Of a DNA stretch of 64,000 nt, positions 6,501-40,400 are shown in pieces. The notes under the pieces are model-generated. The model was not told where the DNA came from, searched no databases, and worked only from the letters and a program-made list of their open reading frames with translations. Within the stretch, counting starts at the first letter, position 1. Each line of letters begins with the position of its first letter. The stretch spans positions 1,922,001-1,986,000 of the forward strand of contig OZ176053.1 in assembly GCA_964247055.1 (NCBI GenBank), read 5' to 3'. Made by a program: the position numbers and the translations under genes. This DNA is from Paragordius varius (taxonomy: Eukaryota; Animalia; Nematomorpha).

Positions 6501-8787
6501 AAATTTAAATACTTTATAAAGAGAATGGGAATAATTGTATTAAATTAAACTCACCAATATTTTTGCCCAAATATTTTGGCGTTTCCATCATTTTCAATTG
6601 GAACAACAATATCGTTACTGCATCTTGAAGTGTAGTTGATACATCCCTTTTGAGGCAGTGTTTTGGATTATTATGGGCTTTTGTGGTATTTAAATTTGTG
6701 GTACCAGGTAAATCTGTATTATGGCTGCTTCCAATAGACAAATTTTGTAATTCTTTCATTTCGTTGGAAGATTTTAAATTAGGATGATCAGATTTAGCAG
6801 AGTTTTGTATGATTGATGATACATCAGTTGTGTTTGTGGGCATATTAGCCTCTCCTATTCCTTGACCCATAATATCCATTTTATCATTCGCATTATTGTT
6901 AAAAGACGCGGTTGACGATAACTCTTCAATGTAAAATTCTTCTTCACTGCTATAATCATTTTGACAACAGGATGATTGGGCGCTAACATTTATATAATTA
7001 GCAGTTCCACCGTATTGATTGTTGTCAAAATAGGTGTAAGTTGGACTACTTAGGAGTGAACCATAGTATGAACTACTAACCCCTGTTCCCGTTGAAGACC
7101 CAGGAGAATTGGAAAAGGGGGAAGCGTAGTATCTATTACTATAATGTGAAGGTGATGACCCAAAATAATAGTTATATTTGGGTGATTGAGAAGAAACCGA
7201 AAAACAATATTCACTATTGTGGGGTGAAGAATTTATCGTGCATGTGGGTGATATCCTACTGTCATCATTTGGACTGTCGCAAGGTCTGTTTTTACACGTG
7301 TCAACGATATTATTATCATTATTTTCCAATACTACGACGAGGGGATTCAGATAGCGGTTAGTTGAAAATGCCTCAAAAAGTGTCTCATAACCAATAAAAC
7401 TGTGCACAATACTTTGATAATCTAAAGTTTGGAGATCTACATCTTTTTTTACCTGCTTGATATAATCATTGTTTTCAATAGTTAAATCTGAATGTTGATT
7501 ACTGTTTATCTCCAATTCTATATCTTGTTGTAGTGGAGTAATTCCGTACTCTTTTGAAAATTTCCCCCTCGGTAAATCAAGGAAATGTTTCAAGACTCCA
7601 TTTAAAAAATGAAAAATACCATGGCTCATTAAAACGTGAGCCGATAGTGTATCATACAAAAAGTTTTTGAAAATGGCAACAAACGTCGTCAAAATATGAT
7701 CATCTATGGTGCAAAAATTTGTGGTTTTTAAGCCAAAATCACACCTTAAAAACCAATTAGCTAAATCAAGTAACAATATCAAACCACCAAAATCTCGTAT
7801 ACGCGCTCGATTAGACGATTCCAACGATAGATGATAAATTAAAATTAGTAAGTTTAAAGTGTTGTGCAAAGAATCATATGGAGTTAAACTTTTATTGTTA
7901 GCGCTATAATGATTTCGTAGTAATACAAATAGAACCTTGACTAAACCAACCGTACCGAAGGCATGATTGATTTCAGAAACACCTAACATTTGGATGAAGA
8001 GGTCATATAAAGTTAAGCTTTGTATCATAGTTTTTGCATCAAGATCGTTTGTTACATTGGCAAAAAGATTCACTTGTAGATTATTCAAAAATTCGGGGTT
8101 TAAAAGCGATTCAAAAGGTGTATTGGTAGTGTCGAAAAATCCTGATGTATTCAAAAGCAGTAATTTGGTTCGTTTTGCTGTTTTAGATGATTCGCTTAAA
8201 TTTTTCCCCGTAATAACCAAAAACATACGAAGCAACACGGTATTCAATTGGTCATAATAAAGTTGTTTATCGTCCAAAGTATCCAAATAAGGTACTGCAT
8301 TATACAAAGACACTACAATATAAGCGAGATCATCGTATAAATACATCTAAATTTATAATTTAAATGTACTTGCTTGATATTATGAATATTCGTAACTTTC
8401 AGCAAAAATCGGCACACGTTTTTAATCAGATTCGTGTTAGGTTGAAAGTTCCATAAAATATTTTTACATAAATGTAAAGGCTAACATAATTAATAGTAAA
8501 TTAAACTTTTAATTTCAAAACATCATCCATATATTTTTCATTTTTTATTATATTAGAAAAACAGCGAAATATATCTGCTTGAATCTCAAGAGAAAAATTA
8601 TTCGATCGCATAATATCGCCTAAATATTTAAAAAATATTTACCTAAAAAGCTTAATGTTTGGCGAACATATTTATCTTCACGATATTTTGCCAAGCAAAA
8701 TAGATTAGCTAGTTTTGCCATATATTTCCGTATTTTAATTTCATCACCATTTGTTAAGGATTGTAAAATAAAGTCAATTTTATCCAT
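3564..8787 (-). CDS. ARMC5: Armadillo repeat-containing protein 5 (ARM repeats plus C-terminal BTB); exons 8787-8643, 8619-8507, 8346-6555, 5738-5246, 4689-3564
   Basis: All junctions are GT-AG and phase-compatible. SSNRARIRDFGGLILLLDL and NFLYDTLSAHVLMSHGIFHFL match recalled ARMC5 segments (NRARLRDAGGLDLL, GFLYDTGALGRL). BTB-like LLREQSQFFATLLSCG...EIILKDIS..F.NVLHYL lies in the last exon. The two short 5' exons are less certain. Confidence 0.88.
8620..8642 (-). other. 23-nt GT-AG intron (ARMC5 intron 1)
   Basis: GTAAATATTTTTTAAATATTTAG. Read-through hits TAG; removal joins ...RQTLSFL-G-DIMRSNNFSLEIQADIFRCFSNI (ARM-like). Confidence 0.75.
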
Positions 8788-9009
8788 TTAAATACAATTC
8801 ATGTGGGGCCGAATAACATGATAATTACGCGTCTGAAAAAAATAAAAAATGTAACATATCTACACTGCACATTATAGAGGGATATAATTTTCTTAAAATA
8901 TAAAATAAAAAAGCATCAGTGCGAATAATATTTTTGGTTTTTATAATTTAAAAAGTTATGATAACTTTTGCGGTGTTCGCATTACACAGTCTCCACAAAA
9001 AAACCGTTA

Positions 9010-9220
9010 AAATATACCGTGGGGTGATAAAAAAATTTTGGATCTAAGTTTTTCAAGACAAGCAAGAAAACTTGATTCGTATCAGATAAAAACATTTATT
9101 TATTAAATGGGCGTGGGCTCACCTGAGAGGTTCAATAATATGCATAATATTTTGGGAACTATTTATGTATATAATATCAAATTGGGTGGATACAAAAGAG
9201 GATAAAATTTTAGAGAAATC
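9010..9220 (+). repeat. Dispersed degenerate repeat shared with about 58730-59090
   Basis: Collinear blocks GGGGT.ATAAAAAA, AGTTTTTCAAG, AGAAAACTTGATTCG, GGAACTATTTATGTATA, GTGGAT.CAAAA. Confidence 0.55.
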
Positions 9221-10295
9221 TGCTAACATTTAATAACAATGCAAATAAAATGCTAAATTTATCTTTTCGTAACCAGCAAAAAATTGATTCTCGAAAATAT
9301 CTAAAAATAAATAATTAAATATTACTCTGGACAAAATTTTCAAGTTTCACATAAATTAATAAACGTACGAGGTCCATAAAATCATGTAAAGAGTTTATGT
9401 CAACATAAATTTTCTTCAAATGCAATCATGATCAATTAAAAATACTAATATGTAATATTGTATAAACATCCTCCCATTATATTCGCAAATGGACCCCCAG
9501 CAAAATGAGTAGTGTGTTAAAATAATAGAGAGTGTTTTGAGAACGAATTATGTCATCAACTTAAAATTCTTAGTTACCGGTCTCAATATATAAAAAAATA
9601 ATAAGATACAGCATGAGTTTAAAAACTTCAATAAATGGATATTGTTTTGATTGTTCATCTTTTTGTGCCTTATTTTATAAATTTTGGATGAAAATGATAA
9701 AATAATTTTCGTAAAATTGGAAGTGGCAAAAAATTTAACATTCATAAGTAAAAAAGTGTTTTTTATTACCGAGTACACTTGACTTAAGGAACTTGCTCAA
9801 CTTCCTACGCTTGGCATATCAAGTGCGGCATTTTTCTCACCCCACCTATTGTTTTGTTTTTTATATATAGTTTATAGTAGATTTTATTGATATTTTTTAG
9901 TTTAGAGCATTTTGCTTTTACCAAAAAATTTATTTAAAAAAGCGCAAATTTTGCCGTCGGAGAAGAAAAGTGTAAATAACTTTTTTAAATTAACTCGCAA
10001 AGGCCAAATTACAAAATTACCATGAAAATTTTTATACATTTTTCCATCAGCATATATAAATTACACCCAGAAAAAGATGGTCAAAACGATTAACAGATGA
10101 TACTTATCTTAGAATCTCTAATCTGATCAATTTATCCTCAGACAGATCAGCATGTCCATGAAGTCCAGCAAAATGTTGAATATTAACTACGCTGTCATTC
10201 ATTCATTCTTGATTTCGGGCGCGTTTTATATTGCAATCTACAAGCGCTCATCACAAAATTGGGGGATGTAAAAAGCTTCTAATAGATCTCACTAA

Positions 10296-11375
10296 TCTAT
10301 ATATTTATAATAATGGAAAATGCTGGCTTTGTGATCTGTTTCTGGAAAACCGGTAAACCCATTCAAATCCAAATATGAAAAAAGTATAATCATTAATAAA
10401 TGCCCCGACATTCGCCCTTTTTTAAAATTAGGCCCCCAGTTCGGGCCCACCCCGTGTAAAAAACGGTGTTTTTTTTAAACACAAGTCCACAAAAATCGTG
10501 TCTTTGAGACAATTTTCCTGAGAATGTGTTGGACCATTCAATTTCAAATATGATTTTTGTTTAGTTATTTTCGATTGCGAACATAGTTGTCTCGCTTTTT
10601 TAATTAAGGCCCTCTTTTTGCCCGCTCCCCCGTAAAATGCCATTTTTTTCAAAAAACGGAGTTCACAAAAAAAATTTTTGAATCTATTTTTCGCCAAAGG
10701 TATGAGACCGTAAAAATTCAATAAGGATTCTACCTATTCCCTGTTAAAAGGCAAAAATTTTAATCAAGCGTTTCTTTGATGATAGCTGCAGGGTAGGGAG
10801 CTACCAGCTAAAAACTGATCCGTTATGTGGCTTTGTGATCTGGTACCGGAAAACCGGTAGACCCATTCAAATCCAAATATCGAAAAATTATAATCACTAA
10901 TGAAAGCCCCGACAATATCTTCGCCCTTTTTTTGAAATAGAATCCCAGTTCGGACCCCGGTGTGAAAAATGGTTTTTTTGAAAACAGAAGTCCACAAAAA
11001 TCGTGTCTTTGAGACAATTTTCCGGAGAAGGTGTTGGACCATTCAATTTCAAATATGATTTTTGTTTACTTATTTTCGATTGCGCCGAACATAGTCGTCT
11101 CGCTTTTTTAATTTAGGCCCTCTTTTTACCCGCTCCCCCGTAAAATGCCGCTATCATAAAACAAAGTCCACAAAAATAATTTTATTTTTCTCCCAAGTAA
11201 ACAATATATTAGTATGAATGCACCGTTTTGAAATTCATATGAAATCATAGGTATTAAATAATGTTTCGAAATAATTTACATATGTGGATCATTTTATTGT
11301 CCCTTTTTTTCAAATCTCCCCCCAGAATTACGAAGGACTTCCTCGGGCTGCGTAGCAGCACTAGATTTACGCTAG
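10296..11375 (+). mobile_element. Non-autonomous Helitron with an internal tandem unit of about 504 bp (about 1.7 copies)
   Basis: 5' A|TCTATATATTTATAA; 3' hairpin GCTGC-GTA-GCAGC followed by ...ACGCTAG|T; inserted between A and T with no TSD. Confidence 0.88.
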
Positions 11376-14284
11376 TAAATGTATAAAAAACTCATTTTAG
11401 GCCTGATATTAGAAACAACATTTATGTTTAATTTTTCATAGAAAATTCGCAAAATTAGCGAATATTAATTATTCATATGCTTATATTCAAAAGCAAACAA
11501 ATTTTAACAATTTTAGTTTTTAAATGTGTGCTCCAAAAGTAAAATTTCCCCCCTCTTAAATGGGCTAATTTACGCGCAAAAATGTCGTGGTCGGGAGATA
11601 AAATTAATACGTGCAACATTATGGCATCAAAGATTTAAAATGTATATTTTCTTTTTAAATTTTAATTTTGGAAATTTTTTTATAAATATACTTTATTGTA
11701 TTTTAGAAATAAAAACGGTAAAAATACACTTTAACATCATAAAAACCCTTTTAAGAATCATGATTCCGAATATGAATAACACCACGGAATAATTTAAGTT
11801 AATTATATGTATTTTTCACAAAGCATAAATTTGATATCGAACAAATTATTTGAGGTGAGTGAAATAGTTAGCTAATTTAAGTTCCTATGCCCTAAATATA
11901 ATAAATTGCGGTTTATCAAAATTCAAAAATATTTATTTTCTATTATTTTCTTTTACATGTCATTATCTAAAAATAAAATTTATATCGCCTAATCTTGGCT
12001 TATTATGCGGTAACTAACTAAATTTCGAGGTTGACACCAAATTGAAAGTTTAGGAGGGCGCCATTTTTTATGGTATACTTACCACAAAAGTGGAAATATT
12101 TGAAATGACTCGTAAGACTCAAAACCAAAAGAATTACAAGAATTTTTCTACAGGAATATATATTTGGTTAAGATATTTTTTGTGTTAAAAACCCACCGCA
12201 ATATCAGCAATGTTATGGGACATTTCATCCCGAATTAATTATAATTTATAATATTTATCTATGAAAATTTCCAGTCCATGATAATTACCTTGTTAATTAT
12301 ATGGTCGCTGTTAAAAAGCTCATATAGGGGTTCGAGATAGGGGGGCCCACTGCAAGAGTTTGTAAAAATTTATCCTCACGTCTAGTAGACGATGCAATGT
12401 GATGAGGTAGCTAAACTAAATACATTTATTACTTAAGTCCACTGTTTTTTTATTAGGTTAAATAGACTCTAAAATTAATCCGTAAAAATATGCAGTTTAG
12501 ATTCTTTTTTTCCCTTTTTTATTAAGGACTTAAATTCAGGTCTTAAGGAAGCATTAACACTCGTATGCTCAGGGCTAATTGATAATGATGATAGTGCCTA
12601 ATTTCGAACTCCTCACACGGAATGTAAGAGTTTGGCGCCCTGCGCACTTTACTAGTGGGATTCGAACCGCAGTCCATCAGTTGCCTAAAAAGTGCCTTTT
12701 TGGACCCTGAATTATATATAAATTTTTTTGATTTGTCAAATATCTGCAAATGTGTCAAACGACTATAAAAATTGCAAAATTTCGATAAAAACTTTACTAT
12801 AAAAGTTGAAAATTAAAATTTATATTTTTTTTATAAGATACGAACTTCAGCCTAATTTTTAATAAATTTCAGACTATAAAAATTATCGTTAAAGAACGAA
12901 AATAAAAATTTTTTGCTTTAAAATGATTTGGTGAGTAACACTGCACTATATACTATCAGGCTTTCTAAACCTATATAAAAATGTAATATCTAACGATTCT
13001 ATAAAAATTATTTTTTAGTATACGCAGACTTGTAAACCATAATTGAGAACATGATAGTTGAAAGTTGCAATAGGAACTAAATATATTAGCTTGTTTGAAT
13101 ATTGAGATTAGAGTTTTCTGAGATATTGATGTTAAGATAAAATAAAGTAGGATCTAAATACAGAGTCGCCGTTTTGCTTGTTATGTTTAAAAGTATGTAT
13201 CAATGTCAAAACCATTGTTTCAACTAATTAGTCTAATATTTAGATTTAAATCTTGTAAAACATTTATTTATACTATATCACAATGAAATTTTTTCTTTGC
13301 TGTTTTATTTTTATACAAGGTAATTAGTGTGTAAGATTGTTGTGCATACCTTGAAAACCACTTGAAGTAAAAAATATGTATTATTGTCAAAAACAAATCT
13401 ATACAACTTATCGGACGGACATGTAAATCAATTGTTGTTTTAAAAATAAATATTGATTGAAAGATATATATATTCCCAATTTATATTGAAACTTTGTACT
13501 ACAATAAATGATACATATATATCTATGTCAATAAATCAACAATTAATCAATCAAAGATGAAATAATTTATATTATTTATATTACAAATATTGATTTTGAA
13601 ACAAAAATGAAATTATTTTAGCAGACCTCTGTTAGACTACTTGTAATGCTGAAAAAGAAACGAATTTTTTAAATTACAAAATTATAATTTGTCTACAACT
13701 AAATGTTAGTAATATAATAAGCCCAATTAACTAATAGATTTCTTCCTTTAAAGGGTCCATAGGTTTGCTTTAATTATTTTGTGGTTATTTTTAAACAACC
13801 ATTATAAAACTATATCTCTTTTTTGCTTTAATTTATGCAAATATATATTAGTAGCATGTCATTAATTAACCACCATATTTGGGTTCAAATTTTTATATGT
13901 TTTGACTGGAATATGGACGAATTAAATTTGCCTTTTGGGTATGTCAAATTGTTTTCTATATGCGCATATAATTTGACGCTTAATTAAGGAGCATTTGAGT
14001 TCAATAACTTGGTAAATTGCCAAAATCAAAATATTTTTTTTGGTAAATTGTTAAAATTTAAGAATTTAAAAATAAAAGGCACTATTTTGCTATTAGAGAC
14101 ACAGAAACCATAATATAAACAATATATTAGTCGATATATTATACAATTTATTAATGTGGGTGCTAAAATATATATTTAGTTACAATTTCATGAAAAAAAA
14201 GATGATTATGCGAATTGTCTAAGTTTGATTGGCTAAAATTTATAATCATAAAAGCTATATAATTATAAAAAAATTGTTAAAAAG

Positions 14285-16685: not shown

Positions 16686-16719
<34 letters not shown>

Positions 16720-17543
16720 TACCATCTAAAAAAATCCATATTTTATAAAATGTATCAAGTTTTTATAGGGCAAAACTGGGATAATCCTGCAAAAAAATTT
16801 TCAATACACTAAATCAATTAACACTTTTTAATATTTTTTTTAAAAAAATCATTTTTTAAAATAAGAAACTGAATAAATATAATTTAACAAACTAGTAAAA
16901 CGGTAATGTATCTACAGCATATTTCTGTTTTAAAGTATCATGACTGGTGCACTTTTGAAACATTGTCTAGATCAGATAAGTATTTTATTTAATATTTATA
17001 TTGTATATATATGTGTAACATTACATAATTTTTTGTGAAAAAAATAAACTTTTTAGTGAAAAATACCCATATCTCATATCTCAAATACTTTTCAATATTG
17101 CCTTATTTTAGTGATAAAATCTACACCACCGACATTGCGATGCGATTTGTTTATATTTATTATTGCATTATACAATACCTCTATGGAGTAAAATAAAAAA
17201 GAAAAATTTATTGTAATTTGCAATCGATAAAATAAAGTTTTTTTAGGGGGGCTTATTCATTTGATGACGCTTTAAGATAAAACTATATCTTCCGCATACA
17301 TACACAGACTCACTCAGACAGACAGAAAGAAATTAATCATTAGATTTTTTCAATTTTTTTTCATTTATTTTTGCGTCTTTCAATACGTTTTTAATGCGAT
17401 TATGTCATATATTAAAATAAAAAAAAATAGAGTGACTTTTCAAAGACAGTGAAAGATTTCATTAATTTTATGATATAGGTATTTATAATACATAGTAAAG
17501 GTACCCTTTTGAAAAAAAACAATGAATGATAAAGTTTTATTTA

Positions 17544-20799: not shown

Positions 20800-22420
20800 T
20801 TTTTAAAATATTTTTGAATTTCCGACGCAATGCCCAAAATCAGCCTATAAATATGTATATACTTCTATTAATTTTCAAAGTTAAACGATTCTGGTTCACA
20901 AATATAATCATATGACGAACATTGACTCACAGGTGACTGCTTAATATCGGTTCATCAGTTTTATTTTCGATGCATCGTGCCATATTTTCGTTACAAAGCT
21001 GATGATTATATTTAAAAGTTTATTAAGAACTACATTATTTGTAATTAAAATGATTTATATTTCAAATGTAAATAATGATTTTTCAAATACCGTAGAGGTT
21101 TATCAATATGGACTATATTAAATGATAAAGACAAGTTTTGACAAGCGATTTACACAATATAAATGCATATTTGAGCATTTGTAATACAAATTTATACAAA
21201 GTTTGACCTAATTTTAAAACTCTAACTGTATTACGAATCCCCACTCTAGAATCGTGAAAGTTTATCAAAACACACGCCTATTCTACAAATTGCTACAACC
21301 GCTTTGATTTTATAAAAAAGTGAATAACAAAAAAAGCTGATTTCTTATTGTAGGCATTGTTCCACAAAATCGAGATTAAAATTCTCGATAAAATCTCACA
21401 GATAAATGTATCAGGATTCTCATCGTACTGGACCTTAGAGAATCTAAAAAATTTAATACCACTTTTTTGTAACTGCATATGATCGCAAAATTAGCGAAAT
21501 GTCAAAAAATTTATTTAGAAAATAAACACTTCATTTCACATCATAATATATCATATTTACTACGCCCAAAATCTGGGTATACAAAAAAATATATTGAAAT
21601 ATATATATTAATATATTCAGATAGGAACATGTATCAGGATTATGATAGTACTTTTGGTTATAACCTGTGGTAAGCATATCAAAACATTATTTTAACATTT
21701 TTTTTGTTGAAAGCTTACTGCTCTATTACAAAATAACACATAATAAACTACATATAAAATGTAGAACGATATTTGAAATTCATTAGATGTGAACTCAGTG
21801 CTCGAAAGACTAGTATACTTAATACACGCAAAAGCGCCGAGGTTCTGTGATAAATAACTTGTATTTTAAAAGTTTTCTAACCTACACAGTTTATTGAAAT
21901 AGTCCAAATTCAATAGACGGCTGAATCCAACCCAATATATATCAAAAATTTGTTCTAAAATGCAATATGAAGACTGCTAATTATTATTTCACAACAGATA
22001 AACATTCATTTGCATATTAGTATTGGTGATTTAAAACTAAAAATGGTGTTGGAAATCATGTGATAAATTTTTAACAATTACCTTTTAAAAAATGAAACAT
22101 GCGATAAAAACTAAGCCTTTTTTAAATTAAGCCTAATAGTTTTAGGTCATTTAAATTTTAATTGCTGTAAGGTATCCACCCAAAATACAATGAAGTATTA
22201 TTATTATGTACATTTTATTAAAATAATATTATATGCATATTTCCTGTCATTTTTGCATTAATCTTCTATAAAATGATAAAAATTTATAATAATGAAACTT
22301 TTTTATATTATTGTGAAATAATGCAAACCCTTGATATAATTATATTAAATTACAAATTTTATAGAAGATTGTCTAACAGGTTTGGTGTCAACTACTTCAA
22401 TCTCTATCAAAGCGAATAGG
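20800..22420 (-). CDS. Candidate unidentified multi-exon gene divergent from PWP2 (candidate exons 21976-21882, 21857-about 21760, 20998-20931; 24-nt intron 21858-21881)
   Basis: Exon 20998-20931 has clean CAG and GTGAGT sites and one open frame (LCNENMARCIENKTDEPILSSH). The 21976-21882 and 21857 exons join in frame across a 24-nt intron. No homology recognised and the full model is unresolved. Confidence 0.4.
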
Positions 22421-22722: not shown

Positions 22723-25700
22723 ATGAAGCACGCTTTTCAGGTATATCATTTTTCACCCTTAAGTTTTCTAATTTATTGGGTACTCTCTACCGTAAAGGAA
22801 ATATCTGTTTAACGGATGAAAATGAATTAATAACACCTGTTGGCAATAAATTATCTATTTATTCTTTAAAAAGGTTTTTAATTGTTTAATTTTTTTAGAG
22901 GCAAATCCGAAACGTTACCCCTAGAAAGTTCTTATAATATAACAACTTTTGCCATTACAAGCGATAACTCTACCCTTATAGTAATTAATGAAGGTTTATA
23001 ATACCCATAATGATAATTATAGAGGGAGAAACTATAATATACAGTTTAATATCTATGTGCATCATTCAAAAATATAAATTTTTCACACACATTAATCAAT
23101 GCAAAATATCACCCAACAATAAGTAAATGAGTTTATAAATGTATAGATACTTTGCTGTTACCAAAAATAATTTAGTGCAAATTTTTGCTTTACCTCATTG
23201 TACACAACGACAGTTCAATCCATTTAAATTGTTAAAGACTTACAAGAAATCATTTGAAGAAATAACTTGTTTGGATTGGTCAAATACGAACAGGTTATAG
23301 AAAATTTTTAAATTTATAAAGTATCAGGGATTTCTATATAAATCCCGTTTTCAGTTTGGTCCCAAATATTAAACATTTTTTTATCCGTAAGTTTAGGTTA
23401 TAAATATTTTATTTGCCAAAAAACAATAACCCGGTTACAGCTTAACTGTTTTTATTGGTTTTTTAATTTAATTTGCAATTCGCAAAAGTTGTAATTAATT
23501 AATTATGTATAATATGTTGCAAAAAATACCAATCCTAAAAGTTTTTTTTAAAAACTACAATTTTAAATATGGTTAAAACTATATAAAAATATTTTTTTGT
23601 TTCTTTTTCTAAAAACAATCTACCAAAATTTACATTAAAATGGTTTTAGTCCATACTATCATAATATTTTTAGTTAAATTTTTTCTCTTTTTTTCATAAT
23701 TGTTTAAATTGATTTCACGATACCATGATCATACATATGCTTAAAATATTTTTTTTTTGAAAATATCATGTTTGTTTCAAATATTTTTCACACAGTTTTA
23801 TGGTTTGTGGTGGAATTGATTCCGTTGTACGTTTTTACAGCCTCGTACCATACAAAAATTTTGGGGGAAGTTTATCCCTATCTGGTCACAAGTCCCCGAT
23901 TGTTGGTGTTTTCTTCCTTAAAGATTCACTGAATGTATAATATGTTCTATTTAGCCTTTTGATTTATATAAAAACTAACCTCTGTCCAAAAATAAATATA
24001 TATATATATAATATATGGATGGGTTTCACACTAAAATATTAAGCAAAAAACATATTTATAATTATACAGAAATATTGTTAATAGTATCATGCCTTTATAT
24101 TTTTGGACAGTAATTTTTTTTACAAAAGTATTTTCTACTAAAGTACATAAAAATGACTTTTAATGTCATAAAGAATTTCGTTATTTAAAACAAAAGAGTG
24201 TTTTATGCCCATAGACACAGTAAATATTGAAATTATACGGATAAAACGTAATAATATAAACACAAATATTTGTTTTAAAAGACTTTTATTAAATATACTG
24301 CAATTACAATAGAGATGTAAATTGGTAACACAATCAATTTTATATTATACGATTGTAAATAAATAACTTTTCTAAGCTAAATTAGTGTTTAGCAAAGTAT
24401 GTTTTGTCTTTTGAAAAAATTTTTGTCTATATATTTTTACGTTTTGTTCCTATATTTCACTGTAATATATAAAAATATCGTTAATATTTAGAAAAAACAA
24501 TAGGTCAATTCACAAATATAATTACAAAAAAATTACACCTGTATTTTTAATGTAAAAAACTGAAAATATGTTTTTCATTGCAAAAAAATTATTCAACATC
24601 TAATCCCGATTTAATCACTCAACATTATTCTATCCCATTATTTTTTTAATCGAGCTTTAGATTTTTCCAATTAAATTCAAAACCTTTCCAATGACCATTT
24701 AACCAACGCACTTGCCAACTAATTAAAAGTATCATTTGAACGTTTAAAAAGCATAGGAAATCGTTGTCTCACGGAACTCTCTTTAATTTGTTGTAAAAAA
24801 TAAATTATTAGTTTTCATTTAAAATTATCCCCTTTAAAGCGAAAGTAGATTTAATATTTTGACTAAAAAACAAAAAATATAATTAAAAAAGAAATGGACT
24901 ATGCTATTTATTAAACGTTAAATTTAAATGCTTTATTTTTATAAATAATTTATTAATAATCCGTTAAATATGACTGGAATACTATTAAATTTAGTTAAGA
25001 AAAGTGTTTACCATTTAAACTTTAAAAATGTCCTTAAGCAACTTCAAGTGGTCTTTAAACATATCAAGTTCATCTTAAAACATCGTTATTTTGTTTATAC
25101 TTAGTCAACCATTTAATATGTTCGATATCATTTGTAATATATTCTTTTTATATAACCTAACGTTTAAATGAATTTAATCTAAAAACAGTATATTTATTAT
25201 TTCTCATAAATATATTAATTTTAATATAAATAAGGTTTTTATTATAATTTTTGTGGGTTTTTACTTTTAATTTTTAGTTAAAATATTAATAAGTTGTTAA
25301 TCTGGTTAAATTAGAGATAGTTAGAAACAAAAAGTTTTTTTTTCAAAATATGTTAATTTAAAAAAACACCAATAAATAAAGATATTAGGTAAAAAAATTA
25401 AATAGATAAATACAGCCAAATATTATGTCATCCGCAAACTTTAAAGATTAAGGACCAACTTGAAGTCTTCAATGACATTCTTGAAGTGAAAATGATATAT
25501 ATTATTTTTTATATTTACTCAAACTCATCCTTGAAAAAAGTTAATTCACCCTTGAACAATTAAAAATATTATATTATAATGGTAATATTTAATCTTAAAA
25601 ACACATAATTTATTTTAGGGTGAATTTGAATTGTTCGAGCGTGAATTTGAATTGTTCAAGGGTGAATTTGAACTGTAAATGGTATATCATTTTTTTATTC

Positions 25701-28700
25701 AAAATTATAGATTGTAAGCGTTAGTACAAATGGCAAAGTTGTTTTATGGCATTGTAATACAAAACTCCAGGATATGGAAATCGATCATGAATATGTGAAG
25801 GGAAAAATGCTCTTGTCTTCTCTAACCAATGAATTTTGCACGAATCCTGAAGGTTATAATATATACACTATTAATGTTACCATACGAAACTTTTATTGGA
25901 AATCATTTACTTATAGTTGTATGGCGTAGTTTTGATAAAATGAGAAAAAATTATTTATATTAACATACTGGAAAACAAGTAAGTAATTATAATTATGCAT
26001 ACATAATTTTTTAATACTTAATTATCAATTATTTTAAATAATATTATACGAGCAAAAGTTATATTAATTATGACATATAATATCCATTTACTTTAAATAT
26101 TATTTAAATCAGGGGGGTGTACAACACTAAAATAAATTGTTGGTAAGTTTTTACAGCCTTATGTTTAAATTATCAATAAAATATTTGTTAATGCCGCGTT
26201 CATATATCAATGTAGGTGTTAGACATGAGTTTATGAGTTTTTGAACCCTAATAATATACCATTTAACTTTTTTATTTTTTTATATTTATAAAAAATGAAG
26301 TTTTGTTTGTAATTTTATTAATACTGAAAAAATAATAAACTAAGCCATAAAAATAGATTTATTTCGTATTAATAATGAGTTATATTAGCCCGAAAACGAT
26401 AAATTATTTTTAGGGTTAATAATTGTTCAGGGGTGAATTTGAATTTTAAATGGTATATATTGGATTTGAGTTCATATATACAGTATGTATTTTGATAGTT
26501 ACCTATTTCACACTTTACTATGGCAATTTGCAACACAACAGTACTGTATGGAAAAAGAAAGGAAATAATTGTTTATTCACTATTTTGTTGCGTTTTTTCC
26601 ATACACTATTGTTGTGTTTCAAATTGCCCTACTATATTGTGAAATAAGCAACCATTAAAATGCCACTGTATATTGATAAAAAATTTTTTTATAGAAGACG
26701 AATATATACGAGACGTGATGCAAGACAAAAATAATGAGGATAGAGAATCTAACGCGTATTTATTTTATCTAACTTTTCGTTTTTAACATAAATTTATCAA
26801 GTAAATATTAATTCACATAAATGGCATATTTGGTTTATAATTTTTTTTAACACATCCTCAATTGTTAATGATAATATACCATTTATTTTGTAACCGCCAT
26901 ATACCCTTTTTAAATATATTGTTTATAAAAATGTATAAAAATATATATGTTTTATTTAGCGATAAAATCATTGGAAAAAATAGTGACGTTGAACCAACAA
27001 TCAAAATTAAATTATCATCAAATCCTCCCCCCTTAATCCGTTATAAAATTGAAAAAAAGTACAAATTGATTATTACTTGTTTTATGTTATTATAAAAAAA
27101 TTAGTGTATTATTATTAAATACCAACTCTTTTTTTAACAAACGGTCATATTATATGTATGTTAATATTAATTAAACTGTTTTTCAAAATATAAATATTGA
27201 CCTAATATAAAAACGTAATTGGCGAAATGGCTAAAGAATATATATTCTTTTGATAATTTTTCATTTGCTCAATTTTTATTTTAAACGACAATATATACCA
27301 ATTACAATTCAAATTCACCCTCAAAAAAATGGTTTTTTATGATGAAAAATTATTTATATTTTTGTTGTATTTTTTAAAAAATAAAATTTTGTTTAAAGTT
27401 GTAATAATACTGAAAAAATAATAAATTATATGCCATATGAATAAATTATATTTATGATGAGTTATATTAGTTTGAAAAACACATAATTTATTTTTAGGGT
27501 GATTTGAATTGTTCGAGGGTGAATTCAAACTGTAAATGGTATATTAATAGTAAACAATTATTGTTATGATTATATGATATTTTTATTCATTTTTTACAGA
27601 TTTTTATATGAAAAACCATCTTCAAATCATTCCACTTTACAAGAAAAACGTGACAATAATGTTAACAATTATTTTGAATCACCCTTTATTGATGCTGCAG
27701 GAGAAAAGCCTAAAAAAACTACTAACGATTTAGATTTTAGGGAATGTAATAATAAAAATAAAAATGATGAAATTAAATGGGCTGTATCAGGCCCATTCGT
27801 TATAACGTGTTGTGATTTCAATACACTCAGGGGTCTTTTAGTATCCGGAACAAATATTGGCGTTTTTTATATACATGAAATGCCAGAATTTTTACCGCTT
27901 CAAACGCTGAGGTAAACTGCGTAAAAATTATATGTATATCTTATTTTGGAACGTTGATGAAAAAATTTTTTATATATGGTAATTAAAGCTATGAAATTTA
28001 AAAATAATCTTTTTTTGCAGAAAAATGATATTTATTCCTTGGTTTTTCATATATAATCAATATGATTACAATTGGAATGTAAAATTGAATGTTTCACTTC
28101 GCTATTTTTTTTATTGGGCTAAGCTATTTTTAGAGAATAGAGATATATAAAATTGGTGTATTTTTAATAAATATTTTTTTTACCTTTAAGTCATATATAA
28201 ACATTTGTTATTGAGGCTAACGATAAAAAAATTTGCTTTATTACACATTTTGCAAATTTAGGGCATAAGGATGTGTTTCGAATATTAAGAAATCTACATA
28301 GTTTGGTTTTGGCACCATATGCCCATTTTATTTAAATCTTAAATAAAATTCCATATTATATAACTCAATCGTGCTCCGATTTATACATACGAAACAGTTT
28401 ATTCAAAAATTTAATATAATTGAAAAGACTTGACGTAATCATTTACAGTATGCATTTTAATGGTTATCACACTATAGTAGAGCTATTTGAAACACAGGAG
28501 TGTATGGAAAAAACAATAAAATGTTGAATAAACAATTATTTTCTTTCTTTTTTTACACCCATGTGTTGCAAATTGTCCCCTTCTATATCGTGAAATAAGC
28601 AATTATTAAAATACATACTGTTAAGCCATTATCTCTGATTTAATGTATAAATACCCATTTGATATTATCATAACTACCAATATTTCGAAAAAACATTTAT

Positions 28701-31700: not shown

Positions 31701-32034
31701 AAAACTAAAAATTTACCCCAAATTAGAAATGAAATTTAAAAAAATGTATTTGTAATTTTAAGACAAAATGCAAGTAAAAACTTTTTATGCGGACAATACG
31801 TAAAAATATAAAGACAAATATATTTTTCTAAACAACCATACTTTCCAAATCGAGATTTAATATAACTCATCTTCAAATGGCAAAGTGTGGATATATATAA
31901 TACTAAGAAAATCAATTCTATATTCAATTTTAACTAAATAGCTTATATGGAAATAAGGTTTTAAAAAATATAATTGCTTTTTATAAAAAATATTTGTCTT
32001 TATTTTTTTACCTTTTGTCCGTATAATTTCATTT

Positions 32035-32070
<36 letters not shown>

Positions 32071-35000
32071 TTTTATATTTGTAACATATGTTATAAAATT
32101 TTATTTTTTATCGCTTAATATAAGTGTTTATGTTTAGTCCTTACTATGGCACTCCACCCTTTGGGTGGAATAATTGGAATATCTACGCTAAATGGTCATC
32201 TCAGTTTTTGGGACACAAAAAGTGCTGAGCCCTTGGGTACTATTGAAGGTGCTCAAACAGATTTACAACCTGGGCGATCACATACAGACCTTATAAAAGC
32301 AACCACAATAGCTAAATCAAAGTAGTAGCCCTAGCTAATAATCATTAATTGGTTAAAATATTTTAGTTTTTTTTAAATCAAAAGATCATTTTTGGAATAA
32401 CGCGAGAACGGGAATAATGTATGCATTTTAATGGTTGCACATTTGACATTATAGTTGGGCAATTCGCAACACAGTGGTATATAGAAAAAACAACAAAATG
32501 TTGAATAAACAATTATTTCCTTTTTTTCCATACACTCCTGTGTTGTAAATTGCCCCGCTACAGTGTAAAATAAGCAACCAGTAAATGCTTACTGTAATAA
32601 TTTTAAATAAGGGCGATTACTGTATTAATTTTCAGTAATTATGTCTCAAAAATTATAACCTTATAGGAAATCGGAAACGTCCATGATAACCAATTTGGTT
32701 AATTATTCATAGAAAAGACCGCTTATTTTTTGAGGGAGGGGGATGGTAAATTTTGAACAAAAAATTGCTTGTTTGGCAGCATGATTTGATTAGTTTATTG
32801 TTATGCGTTATTTTATAAAGCTAAGAAGGTATGTTTTCAGTTTCGTGAACATTTTAACTAAATTATTCATTTTCCATTAATTAGGGCTTTTACCGCCCTT
32901 GCTTTTAGTCCGGATGGGGAAACACTTCTGGCGGGTGGTGATTCCAAATATATATGTTTTTATGCCCTACCCTATATGGATGAAACCAATCAAACGAATA
33001 ATAATTCAAATATTGCCTGGAATCAGGTTACGCTACTCAAAAAATGGGCTATAAATCAAAACCGATCGCTTGACCGGTTAGCCAGTGATGAAAGTTTGGA
33101 CCGAAGACGATTAACGGAATTTGGTATAGATAAAATAAATTTTTCACGAAAAATGGTTCATTAAAATCTCGTATATCATGTTTCTATACCTTACTAATTT
33201 ACAATTAAACTTTTTAAACACTTTTTTATGCTTAAATCTTTTGTGAATTCACGTTTGTATCTCCTATTAATTTCCATTTTTTCAATTACTCCTTTAATTA
33301 CGAAATTAAGTACATTTAATTCCTAATCATAAGTTACCACGTTTTCCTCAATATACTAAAAAACAATAAAACGCAATCATCATACTGTATGTTTAGTTTA
33401 ATTACATATATAAAGTAGCGTATGGCATAAAACAATGTTAGTCCATAAAAGAATAATTTTCTGAAAAACAACTCTAGTTGTATATTATCATATCCATAAT
33501 GAGCCCTTTTTTAAAAAATGTTTTTATTCTTCAATGATGAACTAACGTTGTTTTATGTCATACGTTACTGTATTCCATTATATATATATGGAATTTTATG
33601 TATAAATTTATTAATTATTAGGTAACTTAGCGCGCTCAGAATTTGAAGTTAATACAAACATTATGGATGACATTGAAAATGGTGGTGCTGGAACAGGGAG
33701 CAATAATTCTGCTGCTGGAATAAAAGCCATGGCAATCAAATTACCAGGCGTCCGGGCCCAAGGGGGCGTTGATGGAAGTTCGCGTTTTTTTGCGCCTGAA
33801 ATGCGTTTAACCTCAATTAACTTTTCTCCTGATGGTATATATCTACATACCATTTACATTTCAATTTCACCCTTTGAACAATGCAAATTCACCCTTAAAA
33901 ATTCAAATTCAGTCGTAAAAATATATTTCATGTTAATGATGAATTATATTATCCCGAAAACACATAACTTATTTTTAGGGTGATTTTGAATTGTTTAAGA
34001 GTGAATTTGAATTGTTCGAGGGTGAATTTGAATTGCACAAGGGTAAATTAAATTGTAAATGGTATATAAATGTTTGGGCTTAAAAATGTTTTTGATGGGT
34101 AATTATATATATTTATATGTTAATGATTGCATTGCCAATTGATTTATTATATATGGAGATGGTTAAACACCTCTATCGTATAAAATAAAATTTATGTTTT
34201 TTTGCAGTAATTACTAGCTATTTTTCGCAAGAAAATATTGTGCAAAAAATATGAAATCCAAATGAATACATTTTGTTTTTGTCTATAGTTTTAACTGTTT
34301 ACTGAATTTACATATACCTTTTGTTAACAATTTTTCCATTTTTTAACCATGTTATAACCTTTTTTCTTTTATGAGTAGAAAAGAACGATACTCAATTGCT
34401 TTTGTATGTAACTATTATATTTCAATTTTTATTTTTTTTAGATAGTTGTCGGATAACACACGATTTTCGGTTAAGCTTTATAGAGAATTTTACCTTTATA
34501 GCTTTTATTATATATTTAATAGGCCGTTCTTTTGCAACAGCATGTACTGAAGGAATACTCATTTATTCAGTTGATCCACCCCCGCGTTTATCATTAGCCC
34601 ATTATTTTGATACGGCTTTAGGTATGGATAGTAGTGTAACGCCACAAAATATTCAACATTATTTACGTCAGGATGTAAGGGAATATGGGCGTGCCTTGAT
34701 AGCTAGCTTGAAACTTGGTGACATGGAAATGTTAAAATTAACACTTATAACTATACCTGAGAATGAGGGTATGTTTTTAGCTTTATTTTATTTTATTGGT
34801 TTAGAATGTTTTAAAATATCTACATTTTTTGGATAAATATTGAATTGTAATGCTACCTTAATTCATGGTAAACTTGATTTTTTTTTCAACGCTTAAATTT
34901 TGTGTAAAATTTATTACACACTTTTAAGACTCTAGAGAAAAAAAGATTTTTTCATAACATAATATTTCCTAAAATTAAACATACGCAATATGAAAATAGA

Positions 35001-36101
35001 TTTATTTCGGTATGTAGCTTTTACAAACATTTAATAATATTTATAGTAAAAAAATGTTTTATCTATTTTTTTTTCAAAATGCTAGTTAACCGTTTAATTA
35101 AATGCCTTTCCCCACCATGTGTCTTGCGATTATCCCAAGCCCTAACTCAATGTGTCACCACGTCACAAAAAGATAAAAGTAATGAAATTTCACGCCTGAA
35201 TACAACAACTGCAGAACAATCATTAAATAACTCCTCGCCTCCCAATGTAAAACAAATACCGATTGAATTTTATATGCGTTGGATACATGCCCTATTAGTG
35301 GTTAGGGGTCCTGATGTTTTTTCCAAGTCTGCATATCAAAAAACAACATTATTATTTGATGAGCCTAAAAGCATCAATAATAAAAACCAGGATAATATAA
35401 TGCCAATATCTTCACACTTACAGATTGGACCAATCCTTATGGGATTGCGACAGGCCCTGTCATCCCGATACGATTCTTTGAGAGAAATGTAATATAAACA
35501 AAAATTATTATTGTTGTAAATTTTAAAGACGCAGCATATAAAGTGAAGGACTAATACAGTAGCGTATTGTGTAACAAACAGTTACTCTATAAATTAAATA
35601 AGTTATGTGGAATGATAGGGAAAAAATGTTTATTTGTATAACTTGTAGTGTTTTACCATACGCTACTGTAATAGTTTCTTTGCAAAGAAATGACTCTCTT
35701 TTCTTTATAACCTACCTATATGATTACTATTATTAAAGATTAAAGTGAGTGTACGCTCTACTTCTTATTTTACAACCGAAAATATAGGTTATCATTAGAA
35801 ATTAACTTTTTATAAAATAGGACTTAAAATTAGGCTTTTTACTTTATGTCTTGATAATATGATTTTTACCGTATATAAATATCATTAGAAATTAACTTTT
35901 TAAAAAATCGGATTTAAAATTAGTCTTTTTACTTTATGTCTTGATAATATAATTTTTACCGTATATAAATATCATTATTTAAGTATTTTTATATATTATA
36001 ACCTATTGATGTGCTTTTGCAGATGTAATCACAACAAATATTATGGGGAATATGCGGAAATGTTGAATGGTTTTAAAGATAATCATCTCTCTGTAAAATA
36101 A
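22723..36101 (+). CDS. PWP2: Periodic tryptophan protein 2 (UTP1, WD40, SSU processome); exons 22723-22740, 22764-22873, 22899-22993, 23023-23122, 23147-23293, 23796-23934, 25711-25852, 26695-26755, 27600-27911, 28835-29045, 29595-29743, 30468-30559, 30760-30863, 31284-31434, 32138-32321, 32885-33123, 33622-33834, 34523-34768, 35086-35488, 36023-36101
   Basis: The spliced product reads MKHAFQFSNLLGTLYRKGN..., GNLVVWEWQTSNFVLNQRGHF, LSGHSGPIS...SASWDQTIKTW, AFTALAFSPDG..LAGGDSKYIC, FAPEMRLTSINFSPDGRSFATACTEGILIYS, collinear with recalled PWP2 from end to end. All 19 junctions are GT-AG and in phase. Confidence 0.95.
22741..22763 (+). other. 23-nt GT-AG intron (PWP2 intron 1)
   Basis: GTATATCATTTTTCACCCTTAAG; removal gives MKHAFQ-FSNLLG (recalled PWP2 N-terminus MKFAYRFSNLLG). 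Confidence 0.88.
22874..22898 (+). other. 25-nt GT-AG intron (PWP2 intron 2)
   Basis: GTTTTTAATTGTTTAATTTTTTTAG; removal gives LSIYSLK-R-GKSETLPL (cf. VTVFDLKNNKSDTLPL). Confidence 0.88.
22994..23022 (+). other. 29-nt GT-AG intron (PWP2 intron 3)
   Basis: GTTTATAATACCCATAATGATAATTATAG; removal gives LIVINE-E-GETIIYSL (cf. AIIVDEGGDALLVSL). Confidence 0.85.
23123..23146 (+). other. 24-nt GT-AG intron (PWP2 intron 4)
   Basis: GTAAATGAGTTTATAAATGTATAG. Length is 3n but read-through meets an in-frame TAA; removal gives KISPNN-K-YFAVTK (cf. FSPDGRKFVVTK). Confidence 0.88.
25541..25682. mobile_element. MITE-A, left-truncated
   Basis: GGGTGAATTTGAA x3 then TGTAAATGG|TATA. Confidence 0.75.
26259..26453. 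mobile_element. MITE-A, internally deleted
   Basis: TATA|CCATTTA ... GGGTGAATTTGAATTTTAAATGG|TATA. Confidence 0.75.
26481..26668. mobile_element. Tc1/mariner-type MITE-C (TA|CAGTATG...CACTG|TA); other copies 28446-28620, about 32417-32594
   Basis: Near-palindromic element of about 180 bp, TA TSD, shared internal AATAAACAATTATT and TTGCAAATTG.CCC; all three copies lie in PWP2 introns. Confidence 0.78.
27298..27539. mobile_element. MITE-A
   Basis: Both TIRs present, TATA flanks. Confidence 0.82.
33850..34062. mobile_element. MITE-A in a PWP2 intron, 15 nt after the donor
   Basis: Both TIRs, 21-bp arrays, CATA/TATA flanks. Confidence 0.82.
35791..35977 (+). repeat. Tandem duplication, 90-bp unit x2, in the last PWP2 intron
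   Basis: ATCATTAGAAATTAACTTTTT...ACCGTATATAAAT starts at 35791 and 35881; a third ATCATTA at 35971. Confidence 0.9.
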
Positions 36102-36319
36102 CATAAAAATATACTTTCTTTTCATACAACTATTGTAAAATAAATATATGCTCCACTACATAATCAACATTATTTATATATGTACTGAAGTTTGAGCATT
36201 TTTATTATAATGTTTTTCTTTAAGGTTTTTTAGTATTGCCTATATATTGCTCGAAGTTTTTTTTCATGATATATTTTGGCAGCGCATTATGTTCTTAGCA
36301 TGGCTGAGATAAGATAATA

Positions 36320-37296
36320 AACGGCCCGTGGTTATAATTCAAGGCATACATGTTTGATATTTTTCAGTCTCGAATCTTTTATATAGCTAAAAATAATGGT
36401 TCAAAGGCCTAGATTGCTGAGATATTAGAATACTCGGTTGAAATCTGATTATTACATTTGTTTGATATTGTATAAATTTTATTTAACACAGGAAAATTGA
36501 ATTTAAACCTAAACAAATTTCGAAACAATGTTTCTGTACTATTTATAGCTGAGGCATACCTTACGTCATCGCGAAAATGTTATGAAGTGGATATATTTTC
36601 TATTTAAATAATGTACTAAGAGGATTTGAATCAAATTCTTTTAAAATTTTAAAACAACTTTTTTTCTCATATTCTAACATATTTTAAAAATTGTTAACAA
36701 TCTCCATATTTTTAATTTATTTTAACCAATGTCGCCCATTTTCGAGGGGATAAATATTTTGGCTACATGTAAAATTTACATACTATTGTCGTTATTTTTG
36801 AATATAACATGATATACTTTTTACAATTCAATTTCACCCTTAAACAATACAAATTCACCTTTGAACAATTCAAATTCCCCCTCGAACAATTCAAATTCAA
36901 CCTCAAATAAAATATGTTTTTTAAGATTAAAAATTACCTATATTTTATATATTTTTCAAAAATAAAAATTTTGTTTTAAATTAAAATAATACTGAAAAAG
37001 TAATAAACTATACCATAAACAATATTTTATATTAATAATGAGTTATAATAGTTCGAAAACACATAATTCATTTTTAGGGTGAATTTGAATTGTTCAAAGG
37101 TGAATTTAAATTGTTCAAGAGTGAATTTGAATTGTTCAAGGGTGAATTTGAAATGTTGGTATAGTATAAAATTTTTTGAAATGATACTAAAAAAAATACT
37201 TTCAGTATAATGTGGACTAATAATTTTGATATATAAAGATATAAAAATTTCAAATAACAAACGCAAGCTAATGCCAAAAACGCTTTCCAGCTCCAT
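36320..37296 (-). CDS. Candidate small gene divergent from INTS13 (exons about 37296-37200, 36764-36727, 36601-36564, 36537-36510, plus an unresolved last exon)
   Basis: A phase-consistent GT-AG chain can be built (MELESVFG...HYTE-TKIFIPRKWATL-KIYPLHNIFAM-TTETLFRNLF), including a 26-nt intron. No homology recognised; coordinates approximate. Confidence 0.25.
36817..37159. mobile_element. MITE-A
   Basis: 4 left and 4 right 21-bp units; termini slightly decayed. Confidence 0.82.
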
Positions 37297-37409
37297 TTTT
37301 CTATCAGAAACATTTATATATCATAAGGAAATTTTTTTGTGCATTGTCTCATAAAGCATAATGTTATAACTTCATATAGTGCACTATTCTGTCTTAAATC
37401 GCATCTGTC

Positions 37410-40400
37410 ATGCCTTCAGTAATATTTCTGCTAGAATATTGCAAATTTTTTCAGGACAATCCATTTTATTGGACTAATTCAATTATATCAATTATTGAAT
37501 ACACCAGAATTTTATATGATATATCGTTTGAACGAAATATCAAATGCTTATTATATTATAATGACAATGTAATTGAAATATTTGATTCTCCTCCGAAAAT
37601 GTCAACAATTCTTAAAGAGTTTGCCAAAATAAATTCGAAAATTATTGTGAACAGCAATATTAACAGTTGTAATTTTGATCTTAATGCTATTTTAAAACAT
37701 ATAAATTATGAGGTAAACATTTTTAATATTTTAGAGTGGAACTAAATTTATATTTATTACTCATAGACCAGATTTTATTAAAAATGATTTGAAAAACTTC
37801 CATACTTTTATAGAATTTAATAATATTGTCCTTAATGCGACTGGTCAAAGTTGTATGGACCATGAATTCATTGATAAAGCTACCTTTTATAATTATGTAA
37901 CAAATCTTACAGATCTACAATGCTTAATCCTTTACCTTATCCAAGTTGATTTTATTTTTAAATAAAATTTTAGCGACATTTTAAATTATGTTCAACAACA
38001 ATTAGCGGAATACCCATGAAAGAAGAACAAAATACATCTGGAACCTCAATTAATTACGATGTGGAAATCATACACAGCCAATATGCCTATCTATATTCCG
38101 ATGGAGTGATATACCGTGACAAAATAAAATTAATTGAAAATGGTGTTTTAGATTTTGAACCAGAATCCTTAAAAACGCGACAAGTATCCTCCAAATCTGT
38201 ATTGAGTGGAAATTTTGCAAGTTATAGAAGCGTACTTTTACAATGGTCAACATTCCCAAAAAATATGTTACAATCATTAGGTACATACAAACATAAAATG
38301 TTTATTCAATGCTGTTTTTGTAAAATCTAATATATTTTATATCGTTTGCTCGCACAATGGCATTATTCAATGTTCCGATAGCTGTTTCCAGATTTTCCAC
38401 ATAAAAATAATTAGCATTTGTATCACATACGACAAATTTGGCTTTGTGTTCAATATTTTCGACAAATTTAATATTCACATTAGAGTTTTTCATAAAATTT
38501 AGTGCATTTAAAAATTTTTCGCGTAATTTGAAGCATGCTTTTTGTTCAGCCGTATCATCTGAGTTTTCCATCAAAAGGTGAAACAGCAGGAATTAATTAT
38601 ATTTGTTAATATCAAGATAACTATAATATTAATTTATTATAAGAATTATAAAGAAATTGGCGAAATATATTATTTTTATATATTTTATGTACACATATTT
38701 TTAATTCACTGATTTTGTTAAATATATTTTTTCACTCCAATTAAAACACGAGTAAAATTAAATCATGAACATATAAAATAGAATATTTTAATGGGTAATT
38801 ATTATATCATTGAATTGTAAGCAATGTTTAATTTTTTAAATGTATACTTATATTATTTGTAGACTATTACCAGCAAAATTCTCAGGGTGCTTTTAAGGTG
38901 TCTCCGGTGGAACCACATTCCCGTCCCTCATCATGTTTAACCAATTTCGTTCTTTCAAACCGTATAGTTTTGCTTGAACAACAACAAAACTTCAAAAAGT
39001 TTTTTTCCGTTTATCCATACGAGGAGAACGGGAGTAAGGCAAAAACACCCTTGGAAAACAATATGAATGTTAATATATCGGTTCCTGATCCTAAAGTCAT
39101 GACCCATATGTTGTGTCATATTCAAGGGGCCATATATATCCTAAGTTTGATTCAACCCCATTCGCCTGGGACGCAATGGAAAAAGGCGCTGTTTGAAAAT
39201 GTTGCGGGGATAACTGAAGGCCCAGGTGGCAAAATTACTGATTATCGAATACCGGTAGAGTTGTTTTGCTATAGTTTTTTAAATTATGCTAAAACTCTTT
39301 ATCCAATTTTAATGAATTTTGAGATGTCAACTATTTAACCCACTGTTTCCAACTTTTTTACGCCCAAATTTGAATAAAAGTCTTTCAACATCCCCCCTCC
39401 TTCTTTTCCATAAAAAAAACAAAGATTAAAATGCAAAATTTTAAAAATCATAAACAGTGAGATCTTAGTATCTGCAATTTTTTTCCATATCGGGGACGAA
39501 TCTTGATAATTACCTGAAATCATGAATAACCTTAAATTAGTTCCTACTTTTTTCAAAATTATCCATATTTTTCTCCCCCCCCCAGATTTTACTACTCCTT
39601 TTGGAAACTACTGTTTTTACCAATAAAGTTAGTTATATATCAACATTCAAGGTATAACTTTTTTATATCATATCAAAAGACTTATTAAATACGAAAATAT
39701 TTAACATAACTTATGGTTAATGCCTTTTTACCCTTATAATCACGTGTAGGATTTCTGCAAACTTATCAAGCTTTGTACCCTAACACAAGCATGCCTACAA
39801 AATGGGGTAGAACAATCCATCCTAGGCTTGTCCCATATTAAACCGGAAAAGGTTGATGATAAATATGCCTCCAAACAAAACCGTTTTGCTCGACAACAAT
39901 TAAACCATCTAACCATGTATTGGCCAATAGTTTATAGTGATAGTTTGTTGTTTCATATACCCATGGTAATATAACTTTCTTTTGCTTTTTATACAATATA
40001 TTTTATCTTAACCTTTGTTTTTGTCTGCAAAATTTATTTTATGTTCAATTAAATTGTCGTGTGGTTTTATATCAGGGATGTCCAACCCACTTTTTTCGGT
40101 ACACAAATAATAAAATAATTAAATTTCAATCAAAATGTTTGCGATTATTTAGAAGATAAAGCATGCAAAATTGGGCTTAAAATAAAATAAATTTAAAAAT
40201 TATCAAAGCATCCGCGAAGATATTTGTGTTGGACACCCCTGCTCTATATTATGATTGGGACGGACTCGATCCTTAAATGGTCCCCTCATGTTTAATATAC
40301 GCGCCTATAAATTTATTTCTTATCTAAAAATTGCTCACGGAATTTATTCCTTAATATTTTATATTATTTTAATTTTAATCTTTTTCTCAAAAAGGGTCAT

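Follow-up and report, generated by a model that had tools for sequence, protein, structure and literature searches.

The 64 kb window analyzed here, from Paragordius varius contig OZ176053.1 and numbered from its first nucleotide (nt), has a G+C content of 23-31% and, under the standard genetic code, gives a clean reading as short exons of animal genes. Among these are an ARMC5-like gene on the minus strand (~3.5-8.8 kb), PWP2 on the plus strand (22.7-35.5 kb), and INTS13, or Mat89Bb, also on the plus strand (37.4-42 kb). A preliminary description of this window had drawn attention to tiny introns that carry a T-N-A triplet with its A at a fixed short distance from the 3' end, and had read the triplet as a branch point. 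We found nine supported tiny introns, of 22, 23, 23, 24, 25, 26, 29, 29, and 32 nt, all in these genes, and each of them carries T-N-A with the A at position -9 or -10, where the G of the terminal AG is -1.

Four of these introns lie in PWP2 and are fixed by exact collinearity with the human protein. Exon 1 encodes 6 amino acids, the alignment of exon 2 begins at residue 7 of both human and yeast PWP2, and residue 2 of exon 5 aligns to human residue 111; from the end of exon 2 to residue 2 of exon 5, our model holds 67 residues, as does human PWP2. Intron 1 (22741..22763, +, 23 nt) starts with GTATAT, ends in TTCACCCTTAAG, and has its candidate branch A at 22755 (-9, and +15 from the 5' splice site) within TCAC. 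In intron 2 (22874..22898, +, 25 nt), the candidate branch A at 22889 (-10, +16) lies in TTTAAT and is followed by a T7 run and the AG. Intron 3 (22994..23022, +, 29 nt) has TGA with the candidate A at 23013 (-10); since TAAT is also present at -13 and -7, the choice of this triplet is not forced. The candidate branch A of intron 4 (23123..23146, +, 24 nt) is at 23138 (-9, +16) in TATAAAT. The segment with the first PWP2 exons and tiny introns (22724-23066) is represented by two contigs in DNA run X1, one identical to the window and the other with 27 differences in 343 nt (8%); the latter may represent either a diverged haplotype or a closely related paralog.

INTS13 contains two supported tiny introns. 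Intron 1 (37713..37734, +, 22 nt; candidate branch A at 37726, -9 and +14, in TTTAAT) links open frames of 105 and 76 codons, its retention meets a stop codon, and the exon upstream has a weak match to the INTS13 N-terminus. Intron 2 (37945..37973, +, 29 nt; candidate A at 37965, -9 and +21) links open frames of 70 and 118 codons, and the exon that follows position 37973 begins exactly at human INTS13 residue 253 and has a Pfam Mat89Bb match. The remaining three introns belong to the ARMC5-like gene, where all three were called from the chain of open reading frames (ORFs) alone: a Met-started exon 1 of 48 codons, exon 2 of 37 codons, exon 3 of 45 codons, and a 598-codon exon that carries an ARM_ARMC5 match. 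Intron 1 (8620..8642, -, 23 nt) has its candidate branch A at 8628 (-9, +15) in TTTAAAT. Intron 2 (8481..8506, -, 26 nt) has it at 8490 (-10, +17) in ATTAAT, and another in-frame donor would give an intron of 41 nt with the same acceptor. Intron 3 (8313..8344, -, 32 nt) has TTA with the candidate A at 8321 (-9, +24); the chain leads from it into a 610-codon ORF, and another in-frame acceptor at 8295 would give an intron of 50 nt. Overall, we grade the support for six introns as strong and for three as moderate. All have the GT...AG ends of U2-type introns, and their removal restores an open frame that is collinear with the ortholog in PWP2 and reaches the exon at residue 253 in INTS13. From these frames and homologies, we infer that the segments are spliced out. 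Of the sequencing runs compared with this stretch, X1 and X5 are DNA, and two presumed RNA runs, X6 and X8, gave no match.

In each of the three genes, the supported tiny introns (8313-8642, 22741-23146, and 37713-37973) make up the first 2-4 introns, and those farther downstream range from 50 to >1000 nt, often with repeats inside.

The preliminary description listed eight tiny introns, of which seven are supported (four in PWP2, two in INTS13, and one in the ARMC5-like gene) and one, the 24-nt segment 21858..21881 on the minus strand (GTTAGA...ATACAAG, motif A at 21866), has no coding support by codon-model score or start codon. The frames that flank this segment have coding scores of 1.1 and 2.5 under a codon model trained on the long exons of the window and contain no start codon, and the segment itself lacks a T tract. 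The opposite strand has, at 21861-21889 (+), 29 nt that read GT...CTAAC...CACAG and contain a textbook branch motif, its A at -10; coding context is absent on both sides of this segment. A further 22-nt candidate in the 3' part of INTS13 (40816..40837, +), which has TAA with the A at -7 (+16), was called by the ORF criterion only, and its flanking exons have no Pfam support. For two more candidates, 43191-43212 and 59574-59594, the coding context is doubtful, and since intron calling from ORFs only yields false positives, we kept both as a weak class. The segments 23294-23321 and 33600-33621 were rejected as tiny introns because they are the ends of introns of ~480-500 nt.

When all of these calls are compared, T-N-A with the A at -9 or -10 is found in 9/9 supported tiny introns and in 12/13 with four weak candidates included. 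The eight triplets reported earlier all stand at the offsets claimed for them: TAA with the A at -9 in the segments that start at 8620 (-), 21858 (-), 23123, 37713, and 37945; TCA with the A at -9 in 22741; TAA with the A at -10 in 22874; and TGA with the A at -10 in 22994. The claim that every tiny intron carries the motif extends to 8481-8506 and 8313-8344, two ARMC5-like introns absent from the earlier list, but not to the weak candidate 40816-40837, where the TAA is at -7.

The motif is part of a broader pattern. When aligned at the 3' end, the tiny introns have a block of T at -15..-11, one of A at -10..-7 (7, 6, 4, and 5 of 9 introns have A at -10, -9, -8, and -7, respectively), and another of T at -6..-3, before the AG; the usual 3' sequences are TTTAAT-TTTT-AG and TTTAAAT-ATTT-AG. 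T is present at -6..-3 in 6-8 of the 9 introns. This tract, only 4 nt long, would amount to a miniature U tract, and the earlier statement that a separate polypyrimidine tract is missing was too strong. The donor follows GTWWAT, with A at +5 in 7/9 introns and T at +6 in 7/9. A strict yUnAy is found in only some of the nine supported introns, and none of the nine contains CTAAC. No tiny intron has a further AG between its candidate A and the acceptor AG, and intron 23123 skips an upstream AG at its position 8; both fit the use of the first AG downstream of the branch. Outside the tiny introns, the acceptor of a longer intron in the Kelch gene (50424-50436, +; TTCCACCCTTTAG) is much like the last bases of PWP2 intron 1 (22752-22763, +; TTCACCCTTAAG), as each has a single A, at -9, with a C/T tract after it.

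We also scored pairing with U2 GUAGUA, a crude measure that is independent of the T-N-A motif and for which sites at +7/+8, beside the donor, were set aside (such sites score top in 22874 and 8313). The best-pairing A is at -8..-10 in 10/13 introns, with a mode of -9 and a range from -7 to -13. It is at -9 in 22741, and 8481-8506 has the highest score of the whole set, at -10.

T-N-A is a common motif in AT-rich sequence, with a frequency of 0.15-0.2 per position, and its placement in the tiny introns was compared with decoys, for which GT..AG segments 21-32 nt in length were taken from either strand of the window. The decoy rate of the motif is 22% overall and 30-36% in decoys that are as AT-rich as the introns or have GTW/TAG ends. 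For the eight introns reported earlier, this gives a pointwise P of ~1e-4 for 8/8, and a family-wise P of 0.004 over all 2-nt windows and both rulers, which bears out the rough estimate that so consistent a placement is unlikely by chance. The family-wise test takes the maximum over all 2-nt windows, with distances measured from either the 3' or the 5' end, against interior shuffles or length-matched AT-rich decoys. It returned P values of 0.018-0.023 for the 6 best introns, ~0.001 for the nine supported introns, and <=5e-5 for all 13. As a second comparison, 20 acceptors of longer introns from PWP2, INTS13, the Kelch gene, and the kinase gene were curated blind to the motif. Only 3/20 carry T-N-A at -9/-10, and their branch-like motifs are scattered from -7 to -19 (Fisher P of 2e-5 against 9/9 and 4e-4 against 6/6 tiny introns). 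Since the tiny introns differ so clearly from these acceptors, the -9/-10 placement is a property of the tiny class and not of acceptors in general. The earlier observation thus holds in part: each of the eight sites has the motif as stated, beyond chance, but one of the eight is not a supported intron and the polypyrimidine statement was too strong.

Based on these results, we consider it moderately probable that the 22-32 nt segments found at the 5' end of each of the three genes are ordinary U2-type introns shrunk near a physical minimum, with the A at -9/-10 as the most likely branch adenosine. Several observations weigh against this. The sample is small, and the motif, common as it is, was picked after inspection of the data. 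In 22994, U2 pairing is tied between -7 and -10; in 37945, it is best at -13/-12 (+17/+18); and the weak candidate 40816-40837 has its A at -7. In addition, leave-one-out column models anchored at the 3' end scored -2.0 bits for n=9 (-12..-9), which is not predictive, and +8.4 bits for n=13. Because these models are poorly predictive, the signal is better described as a block with 1-2 nt of jitter than as an invariant nucleotide. The earlier reading of a yUnA-type branch point at near-invariant spacing therefore holds to the extent that there is a real enrichment, specific to tiny introns, but the spacing is that of a 4-nt A-rich block in which the best-pairing A ranges from -7 to -13. The branch-site interpretation of the motif is partly supported by the sequence.

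The same observations allow other explanations to be weighed. It is unlikely, though more likely than the other alternatives, that the branch A is instead measured from the 5' splice site, at about +14 to +17, and that the constancy at -9/-10 is only apparent because most of the introns are 22-26 nt long. T-N-A has its A at +15/+16 in 9/13 introns, an A is found at +16 in 7/9, and the weak candidate 40816, which breaks the 3' rule, also has an A at +16. The best U2 pairing of 37945 at +17/+18 agrees with such a ruler, as does PMC13644364, which reports that in myxobolids and Dicyema the A residues are farther from the AG in longer introns. On the other hand, 3' windows fit 12/13 introns against 9/13 for 5' windows (6/6 against 4/6 in the best set), the leave-one-out scores of the 5' ruler are lower than those of the 3' anchor (-4.8 to -7.8 against -2.0 bits for n=9, and -6 to -9 against +8.4 bits for n=13), and in the 22-nt introns the A is at +13/+14, outside +15/+16. 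The likelihoods thus favour the 3' anchor only mildly over the 5' anchor, most of the lengths being 22-26 nt.

It is less likely again, and in our judgment improbable, that the A block is real but does something other than branching, whether as the edge of a mini U tract, as a protein-binding element, or as a source of stop codons against intron retention. Most of the introns do have the T tract at -6..-3, but decoys required to have such a tract still carry the motif at a rate of 0.285, so that the null is not raised. Similarly, 7/9 of the triplets are stop codons, of which 4/7 are in frame with the upstream exon, but this is no different from the expected one third, and the same slot is filled by TCA and TTA; we therefore rejected the idea that TAA is kept as an in-frame stop, the in-frame share not being significant. 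A T two positions before an A is also the exact conserved core of branch sites (PMC2367711). The explanation to which we give the least weight is chance combined with the post hoc choice of a loose motif and window in AT-rich sequence. T-N-A is indeed expected in 0.30-0.36 of 2-nt windows, column models fail to generalize at n=9, and one of the original eight introns is unsupported; against this stand the family-wise permutation P of 0.001 at n=9, the fit of two likely introns outside the original list, and the low count of 3/20 among acceptors of longer introns.

The tiny introns share a layout in four parts: the donor GTWWAT, a spacer rich in T, the A-rich block over -10..-7, and a 4-nt T tract with the AG. 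The A-rich block is typically TTTAAT or TAAAT, with a T before it at -11/-12. Within this block, the A at -9/-10 with a T two bases upstream is most likely the branch adenosine, which would be bulged from a weak U2 branch helix, and the short T tract and AG would be the remnant of a polypyrimidine tract and 3' splice site. The branch site may be confined by two minimal distances, of ~14 nt on the donor side and ~9 nt on the AG side. In the introns of 22-25 nt, the candidate A is at +14..+16 and at -9/-10, and since two such minimal distances leave little freedom in an intron of this length, they would account for the near-fixed spacing. Together they would also set a floor of ~22 nt, which is the length of the shortest supported intron in the window. 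The donor-to-branch distance, or lariat loop, implied by the candidate A positions is 14-24 nt, which replaces the 13-19 nt given earlier. We infer that the candidate A is the branch nucleotide from its place in this layout and from its sequence context, as a U at -2 together with the branch A forms the conserved core of the human yUnAy motif (PMC2367711), a core that the tiny introns share.

Among 51 animal genomes surveyed in a September 2026 report (PMC13644364, Mol Biol Evol), introns of <30 bp were found only in myxobolid Myxozoa and Dicyema; its main text names no nematomorph (the 51-species list is supplementary), and it leaves open how animal introns of <30 bp are recognized. Our literature searches found no paper on nematomorph introns. 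The window has introns in the length class below ~30 nt (22-32 nt, in INTS13/Mat89Bb, ARMC5, and PWP2), and they resemble those of myxobolids and Dicyema japonicum in being animal GT-AG introns of 20-30 nt. In the same source, the <30 bp introns of myxobolids and Dicyema have 2-3 A residues that are weakly conserved and lie upstream of the AG, and the longer the intron, the farther the A is from the AG, so that a 5' ruler is implied, whereas in the window a 3' anchor seems to fit slightly better, with few long members in the set. The tiny introns here, unlike those of myxobolids and Dicyema, form a minority class at gene 5' ends, beside long introns filled with transposable elements (TEs); their donor still has A at +5 and T at +6, and a T4 tract remains at their 3' end.

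Outside the animals, the closest parallel is the ciliate Stentor coeruleus, whose 15-16 nt introns have the branch A at +10/+11, a 5-nt tail, and essentially one length (PMC9505925). The two systems are alike in the almost invariant position of the branch A (a candidate A in the window), the minimal AU-rich intron, the weak consensus, and a presumed U2-type mechanism, but they differ in that the introns here belong to an animal and have a length of 22-32 nt, a loop of 14-24 nt, and a tail of ~8-9 nt. Trichomonas, Giardia, and Yarrowia, too, have the branch site within a short, constrained reach of the AG, but their genomes are intron-poor and have a strong WCTAAC and 2-4 nt from motif to AG in introns that are not short; the study that describes them (PMC2483917) reported no such signature for lineages with short introns. 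The window, on the other hand, has a weak T-N-A (often TTAAT) at ~8-9 nt from the AG, which is not an anchored motif of that kind. Human splicing fails below ~46-50 nt from donor to branch (PMC11291888), while the distance implied here is 14-24 nt.

Together, these findings point to the same kind of intron as in myxobolids and Dicyema, with an A at a branch-like position, in a hairworm-like ecdysozoan, where tiny introns coexist with long introns inside the same genes. If this holds genome-wide, minimal and conventional intron recognition could be compared within one genome, as a natural experiment. More tentatively, and with the odds rather against it, hairworm-like animals may represent a third independent animal lineage with introns of <30 nt, here with a two-sided ruler that keeps the branch A ~9 nt away from the AG and no closer than ~14 nt to the donor. 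Such a ruler would impose a hard lower limit on length near 21-22 nt and would differ from the A run that myxozoans and dicyemids measure from the 5' end. It would also work beside conventional long introns in the same genes, which would mean two recognition modes of one spliceosome or a specialized factor. We conjecture that gene prediction with such short introns disallowed would introduce frameshifts at gene 5' ends, and that these frameshifts could contribute to the low BUSCO values of hairworm genomes, such as the 71.6% of Gordionus (10.1101/2023.06.26.546503).

The long introns of PWP2 contain very high-copy repeats at 24100-24500, 25300-25700, 26300-26700, and 27100-27500. Their summed contig word depth in DNA run X1 is 4e5 to 4e6, compared to ~400 for single-copy sequence, and the many inverted or rearranged joints suggest MITE (miniature inverted-repeat transposable element) or foldback-like elements. 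A short tandem unit, one frame of which translates as GEFELFKGEFEL, occurs on both strands at 2276-2374, 36813-37161, 42270-42715, and 61819-62088 and looks like part of a dispersed repeat. A repeated TE-like ORF family is present at 10431-11112 (-) and 51823-52188 (-), with one copy within an intron of the tyrosine-kinase gene.

Apart from the genes with tiny introns, the window contains a bHLH gene, BTB-Kelch exons, tyrosine-kinase exons, and an F-box/WD gene. Homolog searches were run exon by exon. Those with the ARMC5-like ORF and the bHLH ORF returned no match, as did PDB searches with PWP2 exons 3 and 4 and INTS13 exon 2, and a homolog search of representatives with one PWP2 exon returned five weak fragments only. 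Pfam was uninformative on single short exons, and Rfam and transfer RNA scans of the window gave no match. The sole database relative of the F-box/WD protein is a protein of the horsehair worm Gordionus sp. (38% identity, E 7e-88), and the G+C content of the Gordionus genome, 26.9%, is near that of the window. This Gordionus homolog (512 amino acids) aligns from 59790 only, and the F-box part of the window ORF (59580-59790, +) is absent from it, so the annotated 5' end of the Gordionus homolog may be truncated. Near the end of the window, the ORF at 63460-63999 has a weak, sub-threshold Paf1 match, and directly downstream of it, an ORF on the minus strand (63267-63407) contains a thrombospondin type 1-like WSPCS...CGGCG motif.

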